Below are positions 42,475-45,481 of a stretch of 64,000 nt of DNA, piece after piece. A program made the translations under genes and the position numbers. The stretch covers positions 8,928,001-8,992,000 of the forward strand of contig OZ116698.1 of assembly GCA_964199315.1 (NCBI GenBank), given 5' to 3'. Under the pieces are notes generated by a model that worked only from the letters and a program-made list of their open reading frames with translations, was not told where the DNA came from and made no database searches. Every line of letters starts with the position of its first letter. Positions within the stretch are counted from its first letter, which is position 1. This DNA is from Orbicella franksi. Its lineage: Eukaryota.

Positions 42475-43979
42475 ATGAAGACTGTTTACTTGATAATCCT
42501 TTTGGCTCTTATGATTTTGTCGGTGACGTCACGGTCTGTTTGCGAAGGTAAGCAGAAAGCAACTAAAGCTCAATCTTCCCATAGGAAAAAAGATGGTGAT
42601 TGGTACATTTACCCAGGATTTTTAGCGCACGAAAACATTAATGATAAAGTCTGCATACGAGGCAAATGGCCCATCAGGCCGAAGCTTATCCCAAAGCGAC
42701 TAGGAATATTTCTACTCCGCCCTGGATGGGACGCTAGTCCATCGCAAGTTTGCATGGTACATTTGTATTGTGGTAGTATGTACAACCACCATTTTTTTTC
42801 CTACGTAGGATTCGTATCTCTCTCAGCTATCGTTTTGATCTTGCCAGAAGAGTTTGAAACGAGACAATTATTTTTCCACGAATTAAATCCTAAGAAGCAG
42901 GAGAGCTATATGTTTTATTCATTTTTATGAAACAAAGAAAGTAAACTGGCACAGCAGTAAAATAAAATGATCGATGTATTGGCGTTCAATGCTGTGCTTC
43001 AAAAGGCTAAAATAAATTAATAAGTCAATTTTCAGATGTGTGGATGTCATGATACAATTTTATGAATACTGTATTTACTTGGAAAAAGCGGATGGAGCAT
43101 TGACGCTTCAGGGTGGATCCAGGAGGCCCCGAAAGGGGTGGTTGTACACCTTAACAACTTTCGCCCTAATCAGGCGTTGATGGCGAGCACCGCAGACGCG
43201 AGCTTCTCCGGGGCCATCCTCCCCGCAAAATGTTTCCGATTTTACCCTATAAAAAACCATTTACAGCGTTTCTGACACTTGAAAAAGTTTGTAACGTGTG
43301 TAAGACATGATGTAAAATCTGGAGTTTCCTTTTTATAAACCAGAAAATCAAAACTAATAATACTGTCGCGAAACGAACATTGTCTTTTCCCAACTTGACA
43401 TTCAGTCAACTGATGGAAGTGAAACAAACTACGCATAAAACTATTTTATTCTATTACTTTTATGATGAGTCAAACAAATAACAAAAGAACTGCTGTTTAA
43501 AGGGGGTGGGGGTTGCAACCCTTTCAACTCCTTCCCTGGATCCGCCTCTACGCCCACTTAAAGGAGCTACGTCATGGCTCGCGCATCTTGAAAAGTTTAG
43601 CCTAAATTTTTCAAGTTCGTCGTTTCAGGTAATCTTTACATGTCAATCTTCTTCATCCTCAACCATCCTTGTTCCTTTGTGGTTTTTAATCTCTTTGGTG
43701 TTTTCCTTAGCAAACTGCTATTTTCAGATTTCCTTCATGATCAATTGAAAGTCAACACTGCACACCACCAAAATAACTTACAATATCGTGACTGAGCTCC
43801 GTTAAGGTCCTTAAACTGACTTTTCAGCTGTTTCAGACACCGCAGACTTTCTTGGAGAATACTACAGTGATGTAATCAATGATCCGCGTCCTTGCAACGG
43901 GAATGAAACTTGTTTTCACGAGTGCGAAGATAGCGGGAAAACAGATGACGAATGTAATGCAGAATGCGATTGTCCATGA
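42475..43979 (+). CDS. Secreted acidic Cys-rich peptide, copy 1, 71 aa
   Basis: Exons 42475-42547 (donor gtaagc) and 43837-43979 (acceptor tttcag) join in phase 1: MKTVYLIILLALMILSVTS-RSVCEDTADFLGEYYSDVINDPRPCNGNETCFHECEDSGKTDDECNAECDCP. Confidence 0.8.
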
Positions 43980-44625
43980 AAAAGATGTATTCTGTGCTGA
44001 GAGAAATCGCTGTTAAGTGTGATGAAGATTAAAATCCGCTGTTTTTCTAATATTTGAGTACATTCTGTTATGTCTACTTCACCAACAATCTCTTTCATTG
44101 CTGGAGATTTTTATATTAGTTAGCTCAGCTTCATACGATGCCTTTGACTTAAGTCATGACAATGATATTTGGAACTGCAAAATAATAACGAGGAAAAGAA
44201 AAATAGAAACTACTGATATTTTGAACTATCTATTCTTCTCGTTATCTATACGCTTTCGAGTTGTGTATTTGCCAAATCCATAGCTCTCTCAAGAAGACAC
44301 CTAGTGACTGAACAAAAGAACTAAAGCAGGGCTTTAAAGACAGCTTCGACGACAGTTTCACCTTACTTTGGAGTAAATTACCGCTTACTCATTTTTACGT
44401 GGTAACTTCTAAGGGTGAGGGGAACAATAAGCGCTTGATGGCTAGCCCTAAGAGAAACAGTGAGTTTTGGAAATTCGAAGAGTGTGTTGGTGTTGCCAGC
44501 TAATTTCCCCAAAGGTTGCTTCAACAGCATAAGGAATTCGGTGTCACAGGTGATCTCATACGTATTATGTAACATCAAGAAAAGATCAATGTACCTCTTG
44601 GTGATATATTCTAATGGCCTGTTTT

Positions 44626-44862
44626 GGGGAAGCAGTGGCGAGAGCGCTCGTCTCCCACCAATGTGGCCTAGGTTTGATTCCGGCCCGGTACCACATGTGG
44701 GTTGAGTTTGTTGTTTGTTTTCGCCTCGTTTCGAGGATTTTTCTCTGAGTTCTCCGGTTTTCTTCCCTCCACAAAAACCAAAACTCCAAATTCCAATTCG
44801 CCCCAGGACGGAGGACCCGCATGAAAACCAACTAAGGCTAATGTGACTTCCTCTCTAAATAA
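44626..44862 (+). mobile_element. tRNA-derived SINE between the peptide paralogs
   Basis: gcagtggcgagagcgctcgtctcccaccaatgtggcctaggtttgattccggccc (A/B boxes) followed by a SINE body. Confidence 0.75.
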
Positions 44863-44980
44863 TTTTTAGGGTCCCAGCAGTGTAAGAGAGTAAAATCATT
44901 CTCCTTTGTTTGTGTTTGTTTTTGTTTTATCAATTTACATGTTTCAGATTGTTCAATATTTCTTTGCTAGTAGTTCAAGC

Positions 44981-45481
44981 ATGAAGACTGCTTACTTAGT
45001 GATCCTTTTCGCTCTTATAATTTCGTCAGTGACGTCACAGTGTGTTTACGAAGCTATCGTGTTGAACTTGCCAGGAGAGTTTGAAACGAGACAATTATCT
45101 TTCCACGAAATAAATTCTCAGAAGCAGGAGGCCATATGCTTTAATTTCTATGAAAGGAAAGTGGCAGTAAAATAAGGTTAAGGTCTGCTGTTACGGCAAT
45201 GCTGGGCTGTAAAAAACAACATTAAAAAGCCGATTTTCAGATGTGTGCATCTTAATAATGCTTGCTTGGAAACAGCGGATGCAATTTTGATGCCCACTTA
45301 ATGTCACTTAACTATGACTTTTCATTTCTTAGACACCGCGGACCTTTCTGAAGACACGGCTGAAGAATACTACAGAGATGTAATCAATGATCCGAGTGCA
45401 TACAACATTGTGGAAAATTGTGTTGACGAGTGCTTAGAGAACGGGAAGACAGATGTTGAGTGTCGCGATGAATGCAACTAG
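44981..45481 (+). CDS. Secreted acidic Cys-rich peptide, copy 2; canonical donor missing, possibly a pseudogene
   Basis: Signal exon MKTAYLVILFALIISSVTSQCVYE (44981-45053) and paralogous exon 45333-45481 DTADLSEDTAEEYYRDVINDPSAYNIVENCVDECLENGKTDVECRDECN*. Intron and 3' UTR similarity to copy 1. Confidence 0.55.

Follow-up and report, generated by a model that had tools for sequence, protein, structure and literature searches.

We analysed a stretch of 64,000 nucleotides (nt) of DNA from Orbicella franksi (contig OZ116698.1, positions 8,928,001 to 8,992,000 of the forward strand; hereafter the window), AT-rich eukaryotic sequence with 35-44% GC, in which two related genes follow one another on the forward strand between positions 42475 and 45481. 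These genes, hereafter copy 1 and copy 2, did arise by tandem duplication: the duplicated units, at about 42383-44078 and 44884-45590, are 75-91% identical depending on the segment, and no further copy was found elsewhere in the 64-kb window. Each ends in an exon for a cysteine (Cys)-rich peptide, and we tentatively read the pair as members of a family of secreted acidic peptides. In the DNA between the copies, about 44600-44880 resembles by eye a tRNA-derived short interspersed nuclear element, and it is 96% conserved between the two closest lineages compared below, against 92.6% for the adjoining intergenic DNA.

Copy 1 is intact, provided that its signal exon (exon 1) splices straight to its Cys-rich exon (exon 3). 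Exon 1 starts with the ATG at 42475, encodes the hydrophobic core VYLIILLALMILS, with a mean Kyte-Doolittle value of 2.9, and ends at a strong canonical donor (AAG/GTAAGC, at 42548). Two acceptors lie 9 nt apart at 43828 and 43837, both in frame, the first of them pyrimidine-rich, and the resulting GT..AG splice gives a precursor of 71 or 74 amino acids that ends at the stop codon 43977-43979. When the 71-residue isoform is cut at residue 19, the remaining 52 residues include 15 aspartates or glutamates and 3 lysines or arginines. The Cys residues encoded by exon 3 are spaced 5, 3, 9, 3, and 1 residues apart, which gives the pattern C-x5-C-x3-C-x9-C-x3-C-x-C. An earlier reading of this locus, made from the DNA letters and their translations (hereafter the original prediction), had described this signal peptide, this acidic region and this six-Cys pattern, and its coordinates, composition and spacings all match ours. 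Its Cys count stands for exon 3, yet it passed over a seventh Cys in the 52-residue region, which is encoded by exon 1.

The last exon of copy 2 (acceptor at 45333, frame ending at 45481) encodes four Cys spaced 3, 9, and 3 residues apart, and the motif E-Y-Y-x-D-V-I-N-D-P is present in both copies, in agreement with the paralog pattern C-x3-C-x9-C-x3-C and the common motif that had been predicted. The structure of the gene is another matter. No GT is found in copy 2 where copy 1 has its exon-1 donor, and the 279-nt segment that follows this donor in copy 1 (42548-42826, intron 1) is wholly absent; since the donor went with it, the splice originally drawn for the paralog is non-canonical. Only one in-frame GT in copy 2 reaches the proper acceptor, and it matches the donor consensus at 5 of 9 positions. 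Because the loss of intron 1 removed the only strong donor, the copy 2 signal exon cannot join its Cys exon in frame, and under the copy 1 splice model this gene is structurally disabled, contrary to the first description of the locus as a tandem pair of secreted peptides. The features of both copies are listed in Table 1.

Table 1. Features of the two gene copies, with positions in the window.
Feature	Position	Strand	Remarks
Copy 1 exon 1	42475..42547	+	ATG, signal peptide, one extra Cys; ends in phase 1
Copy 1 intron 1 (GT..AG)	42548..42826	+	Homologue of the outgroup's 53-nt intron; larger because a repeat was inserted
Copy 1 E2, conserved exon-like block	42827..42905	+	Slowest-evolving piece of the locus; ATTAAA hexamer; 3' end undefined
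Copy 1 Cys-rich exon (exon 3) through stop	43828..43979	+	Alternative acceptor 43837; encodes E-Y-Y-S-D-V-I-N-D-P, then six Cys
ATTAAA polyadenylation-type hexamer	44028..44033	+	49 nt past the copy 1 stop
Copy 2	44981..45481	+	Signal exon fused to E2 (intron 1 absent), 200-nt intron-2 homologue, four-Cys exon
AATAAA hexamer	45540..45545	+	59 nt past the end of the copy 2 exon-3 open frame

A HMMER search over 1.84 billion representative proteins returned four hits, two of which are genuine: the genomic open reading frame (ORF) of the copy 2 last exon, and an 85-residue genomic ORF with four Cys on a contig of a more distant relative. The other two are SRCR-repeat proteins and were rejected as spurious, their score being summed over many weak repeats. 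From cluster members and exact look-ups we assembled 26 loci (L001-L026). L002-L013 are 99% identical to the window and belong to the same species; L014-L025, 92-99% identical by segment, represent a sister species or a deep haplotype group (hereafter the sister lineage); L001, from an ENA assembly, and its second haplotig L026 are about 80% identical and serve as outgroup. To judge from these hits, the gene family is found only in close relatives. The outgroup gene is single-copy within 20 kb and syntenic with the window locus. It is intact under the model that joins exon 1 to exon 3, with a start codon, a donor (AAG/GTCAGT), a 53-nt intron 1, an acceptor and a stop, and encodes a 68-residue precursor. 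Its peptide has only the inner four Cys, spaced 3, 8, and 3 residues apart, and is closer to that of copy 2. The conserved core of the family is thus the four-Cys twin CX3C, C-x3-C-x8/9-C-x3-C.

The outgroup also bears on the direction of the Cys difference between the copies. The neighbours upstream of it correspond to 33.7-37.0 kb and 41.76-41.94 kb of the window, and its 3' flank runs into the flank of copy 1 past the end of the duplicated unit; from this collinearity on both sides, the outgroup gene is therefore the positional counterpart of copy 1. The first of these neighbouring regions is a conserved upstream gene in its own right, the main blocks of window positions 33743-36951 being 86-89% identical to L026 positions 1866-6184, with ADH_zinc_N hits in the ORFs there. 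The rooting of the three genes cannot be fixed: two of the three rootings give a four-Cys ancestor, and the third is ambiguous and conflicts with synteny. By parsimony, because the syntenic single-copy outgroup has four inner Cys, the outer Cys pair was more likely gained in copy 1 than lost from copy 2. The coordinated disulfide loss of the original prediction is thereby turned into a probable gain.

Several lines of evidence bear on whether exon 3 codes for protein. Between copy 2 and the outgroup we counted 10 synonymous changes at 24 sites and 18 nonsynonymous changes at 105 sites, which corresponds to a ratio of nonsynonymous to synonymous rates (dN/dS) of 0.33 (one-sided Fisher p = 0.012); dN/dS was among the checks that the original prediction had proposed. 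The differences fall on codon positions 1, 2, and 3 in the numbers 11, 4, and 13, and every indel that separates the three genes in exon 3 is a multiple of 3 in length. The four inner Cys and E-Y-Y-x-D-V-I-N-D are invariant across all eight aligned sequences. A poly(A)-type hexamer lies 49-69 nt past the stop in each of the three genes, and it is AATAAA at the matching place in copy 2 and the outgroup. Together with the intact outgroup gene, these observations argue that this frame of exon 3 is being translated, or was until recently. When copy 1 is compared with copy 2, the codon-position differences are flat (11, 11, and 12), and the exon-3 branch of copy 1 (0.176) is more than twofold longer than that of copy 2 (0.077), whereas its exon-1 branch is the shorter one (0.055 against 0.096). 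The flat pattern and the long branch would fit either relaxed or diversifying evolution of the copy 1 peptide.

From the eight-sequence alignment, AlphaFold2 predicted two helices across the twin CX3C in both peptides (residues 26-34 and 39-46 in copy 1, 24-36 and 41-48 in copy 2) and no strands. The predicted local distance difference test (pLDDT) of the block is 64-88 across the helical part, and its mean of only 64-66, which is moderate, on models that have eight sequences behind them, counts against leaning heavily on this fold. Because the family core has four Cys and the model is helical, we favour a helical hairpin with nested bonds over a scorpion-toxin-like fold. The CX3C..CX3C core to which the original prediction drew attention is borne out as a conserved family feature, modelled as two helices in both copies. 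Neither Cys exon nor the read-through ORF of copy 2 had a match in Pfam. A PDB sequence search with the family profile placed Tim13 first, aligned over the two CX3C stretches at a non-significant E = 0.23, and Foldseek against the PDB gave nothing significant, its neighbours being small disulfide-rich helical proteins (thionins, Mu8.1, wasabi receptor toxin, and Ole e 6). No relevant paper was found in the literature on the motif strings. No significant match to a described family appeared in Pfam, the PDB, Foldseek or two very large protein searches, which is in keeping with the candidate new family of the original prediction.

Our leading explanation, to which we give a little less than an even chance, is that the locus belongs to a family of small, secreted, strongly acidic peptides with a twin-CX3C core behind an acidic E-Y-Y-x-D-V-I-N-D tail, confined to close relatives. 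The signal peptide would direct the product into the secretory pathway. The two CX3C stretches would sit in two helices that run antiparallel and are held by two nested disulfides, the arrangement of other CX3C..CX3C hairpins. In copy 1 the outer Cys may form a third bond that joins the ends, a possible pairing made less straightforward by the seventh Cys, which leaves an uneven number. Contacts could then be made through the acidic surface and the Tyr-rich tail, with a cationic partner or Ca2+ as the extracellular ligand, and we infer such an extracellular binding role in preference to others. Copy 2 would most likely be a recently disabled copy that has kept the ancestral-type four-Cys sequence, and the family as a whole would be dispensable.

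Between the signal exon and the Cys exon the gene is less simple than the original prediction had it, since intron 1 and a conserved block present after it in both copies, which we call E2, had been overlooked. At the place of intron 1, the outgroup has a 53-nt segment that starts with GTCAGT, contains CTAAC, and ends with a pyrimidine run and AG, and its ends are homologous to those of the copy 1 segment 42548-42826. The copy 1 segment is therefore taken as an intron, the block that follows it as exon-like, and copy 2 as a gene that lost the intron exactly. The copy 1 intron is longer than that of the outgroup because of the insertion of a dispersed repeat (about 42571-42812), a relative of which lies at 16517-16765 of the window. 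Exact intron loss is a product of recombination with a spliced RNA copy, and we infer that exon 1-E2 splicing probably occurred in the germ line.

The counterparts of E2 lie at 45054-45132 in copy 2 and at 9833-9910 in outgroup locus L001. The p-distance among them is 0.09-0.13, against 0.20-0.30 in exon 3; they have a conserved A(A/T)TAAA, and conservation drops about 20 nt beyond this hexamer. Read from exon 1, E2 of copy 1 gives a short open frame with a stop at 42928-42930 that never reaches the Cys domain, and across the genes this frame stops after 22 to 40 codons, at a place that differs gene by gene. Most of the few changes in E2 alter amino acids, with no coding-type pattern, and in the outgroup that frame contains a stop codon. 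For E2 a hairpin of 13 bp was predicted, without covariation, and Rfam gave no family at threshold. The block may serve as an alternative terminal exon or as a regulatory element at the RNA level. Three-exon models that run from the ATG through E2 into the Cys domain were also considered, by listing every frame-keeping GT..AG pair, and were rejected, as only weak sites emerged; the one pair common to all three genes has a donor with 4 of 9 consensus positions and a purine-rich acceptor, and would delete the conserved E-Y-Y. The exon-1 donor probably chooses between the near acceptor, which gives E2 and the short frame devoid of Cys, and the far one, which gives the Cys exon.

The same block supports a different explanation, which we hold to be possible though rather unlikely: the Cys peptide is no longer, or never was, made, exon 1 is spliced to E2, exon 3 is a 3' untranslated region or a relic, and the copies are decaying or non-coding, with E2 functional as RNA. 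The exact intron loss, which implies an exon 1-E2 spliced RNA, speaks for it, as do the slow evolution of E2, with its mostly amino-acid-altering changes, and the in-frame stop of the outgroup. A number of further observations weigh against an active peptide family, and those on the donors of E2, the sister lineage and transcript-derived ORFs also for this alternative. E2 has no donor both strong and in frame that can reach the Cys exon, and since intron 1 of the outgroup is tiny, with good signals, joining to E2 may be the normal course for exon 1. In the sister lineage neither copy is free of interruptions: the copy 1 Cys exon has one in-frame stop in all three contigs, and copy 2, which has also lost intron 1 there, is devoid of its ATG start in all eight. 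Even within the species of the window, the sixth Cys is replaced by another residue in one haplotype (L013). Between the two lineages, exon 3 has not been kept better than its flanks, being 93.7% identical in copy 1 against 92.6-93.4% in the flanks, and 98.0% in copy 2 against 98.0-99.2%; the variant sites of copy 1 exon 3 comprise 5 synonymous changes, 6 nonsynonymous changes and 1 stop. Finally, no spliced product of any isoform was found in collections of 5.8 and 1.84 billion proteins, a weak negative for expression, even though neither the length limits nor the word limits that applied would have kept such products from being found. When the copy 1 exon, the alignment of the family and the exon 1-E2 ORF of copy 2 were used as queries in word-indexed protein searches, all matches were ORF calls on genomic DNA of the same genome or of very closely related ones, and no transcript-derived ORF was found in the collections searched.

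These interruptions suggest that the family is being lost in a close relative and is partly decaying. The view that the Cys peptide is no longer made, or never was, nonetheless has against it the coding-type evolution of exon 3 between copy 2 and the outgroup, in which second positions are spared and the indels keep the frame, and the invariance of the four Cys and of E-Y-Y-x-D-V-I-N-D. The phases of exon 1 and exon 3 fit each other, copy 1 and the outgroup both have an open frame, and a function of E2 as RNA finds no help in a hairpin that does not covary or in the Rfam result.

We consider it improbable that, as originally proposed, each copy encodes a functional secreted peptide and one disulfide was shed by the paralog in a coordinated manner, which would reveal a 1-6 pairing. 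Tyr sulfation and a part played as toxin, inhibitor or skeletal protein, which the original prediction also raised, are hypothetical. The exon-3 frame of copy 2 is indeed open and close to the outgroup sequence, and the weak GT of the window lineage lies two codons upstream of the old exon-1 end, in frame with the acceptor; however, this GT has the poor consensus match given above, no canonical donor stands at the homologous place, the four-Cys outgroup makes a gain likelier, and copy 2 of the sister lineage has no start codon. Least probable is that copy 1 belongs with the cysteine-stabilised (CS) alpha/beta peptides, such as scorpion toxins and defensins, and pairs its Cys 1-4, 2-5, 3-6: its six Cys formally fit C..CxxxC..C..CxC, and because of this copy 1 weakly resembles alpha-KTx toxins and drosomycin, its best PDB sequence matches, but these are not significant (E = 0.24-1.4), copy 2 and the outgroup have neither the CxC nor the first Cys, the sixth Cys varies between haplotypes, the moderate-confidence AlphaFold2 model has no strands, and the family profile shifts the top PDB match to the twin-CX3C Tim13, so that membership was rejected; the C4-C5 gap of such toxins, moreover, is not known to fall below 4 residues, against 3 here.

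Returning to the acidic hairpin family, a bolder version of it is that this is an undescribed animal, presumably cnidarian, family of secreted acidic twin-CX3C hairpins in which one duplicate recently gained a third disulfide and evolved fast under diversifying selection, and in which the near acceptor and E2 gate peptide production; we regard this version as speculative and unlikely. If expressed, the peptides would be an acidic addition, borne by a signal peptide, to the disulfide-stapled helical-hairpin peptides, and to our knowledge none of these is known in this animal group. They would also illustrate, on a small scale and in a datable way, how a disulfide comes to be added once a gene has duplicated. 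The birth and death of orphan secreted-peptide genes can be followed in compact form at this locus, through its exactly lost intron, its conserved E2 block, and the repeated disabling of the copies in the sister lineage. At present the locus is a candidate only.

Other features of the window lie outside the two genes. Upstream, a 1.1-kb segment (40450-41576) is absent from other haplotypes of the same species, since in L004, L012, and L013 position 40449 is followed directly by 41577. At its two ends stand oppositely oriented tandem arrays of a 22/46-nt unit (40457-40665 and 41360-41568), and it looks like a polymorphic insertion of the foldback type or akin to miniature inverted-repeat transposable elements. 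Downstream, an uninterrupted open frame of 2007 codons on the reverse strand (47305-53328) codes for a protein with numerous TPR repeats and a CHAT domain at its C terminus; looked up as an exact sequence from the first ATG, this product gave no record. A polymorphic indel lies beside the 3' end of this frame, where 46666-47288 is absent from the same-species contig L005. A tRNA match on the reverse strand at 29455-29527 scores 36.1 bits, at the Rfam gathering score, and runs of N occupy 37449-37592 and 60524-60723.

Several known systems resemble the predicted peptides. The small Tims, among them Tim13, have a twin CX3C too and form a helical hairpin pinned by disulfides, such as is predicted here. 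They are mitochondrial intermembrane-space proteins not known to have a signal peptide, unlike the peptide described here, with its hydrophobic N-terminal signal sequence; given this and the E = 0.23 of the Tim13 match, we rejected membership. The pollen allergen Ole e 6 and conotoxin Mu8.1, the best Foldseek neighbours, have a generic helical hairpin likeness only, with non-significant E values of about 3.8-7.5. The coral SCRiPs are likewise small, mostly anionic, secreted Cys-rich peptides with a signal peptide and a narrow taxonomic range (PMC2652719). They differ in their frame of eight Cys ending in CCC, Cx6-7Cx4-6CPx3-6Cx4-6Cx5-6CCC (PMC2652719), as opposed to the four or six Cys with other spacing found here, and gave no sequence match, in keeping with the original view that the peptides are not SCRiPs.

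The closest likeness is to the alpha-hairpinins of plants and the CS-alpha/alpha toxins, which include kappa-hefutoxins, OmTx, and the cone-snail peptides flf14 and vil14. All have the motif C-x3-C-xn-C-x3-C, for which the published range of n is 4-20 (PMC11591084), and n is 9 here and 8 in the outgroup. A helix-loop-helix, predicted for our peptides with moderate confidence, would be a further point in common, and by analogy they would be expected to have the nested pairing C1-C4, C2-C3 known from alpha-hairpinins, kappa-hefutoxins and cone-snail peptides (PMC7191063). In contrast to these groups, the peptide here is strongly acidic instead of basic, has a long conserved acidic N-terminal tail, and comes from a precursor with a single module behind the signal peptide, in an animal genome. 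The extra Cys of copy 1 are spaced x5 and x1, against x3 in the published 6C motif (PMC11591084). No sequence relationship to members of these groups was found in Pfam, PDB sequences or the large protein searches. The family is thus not a demonstrable member of either group, yet by its motif and predicted fold it appears to be of the alpha-hairpinin/CS-alpha/alpha type.

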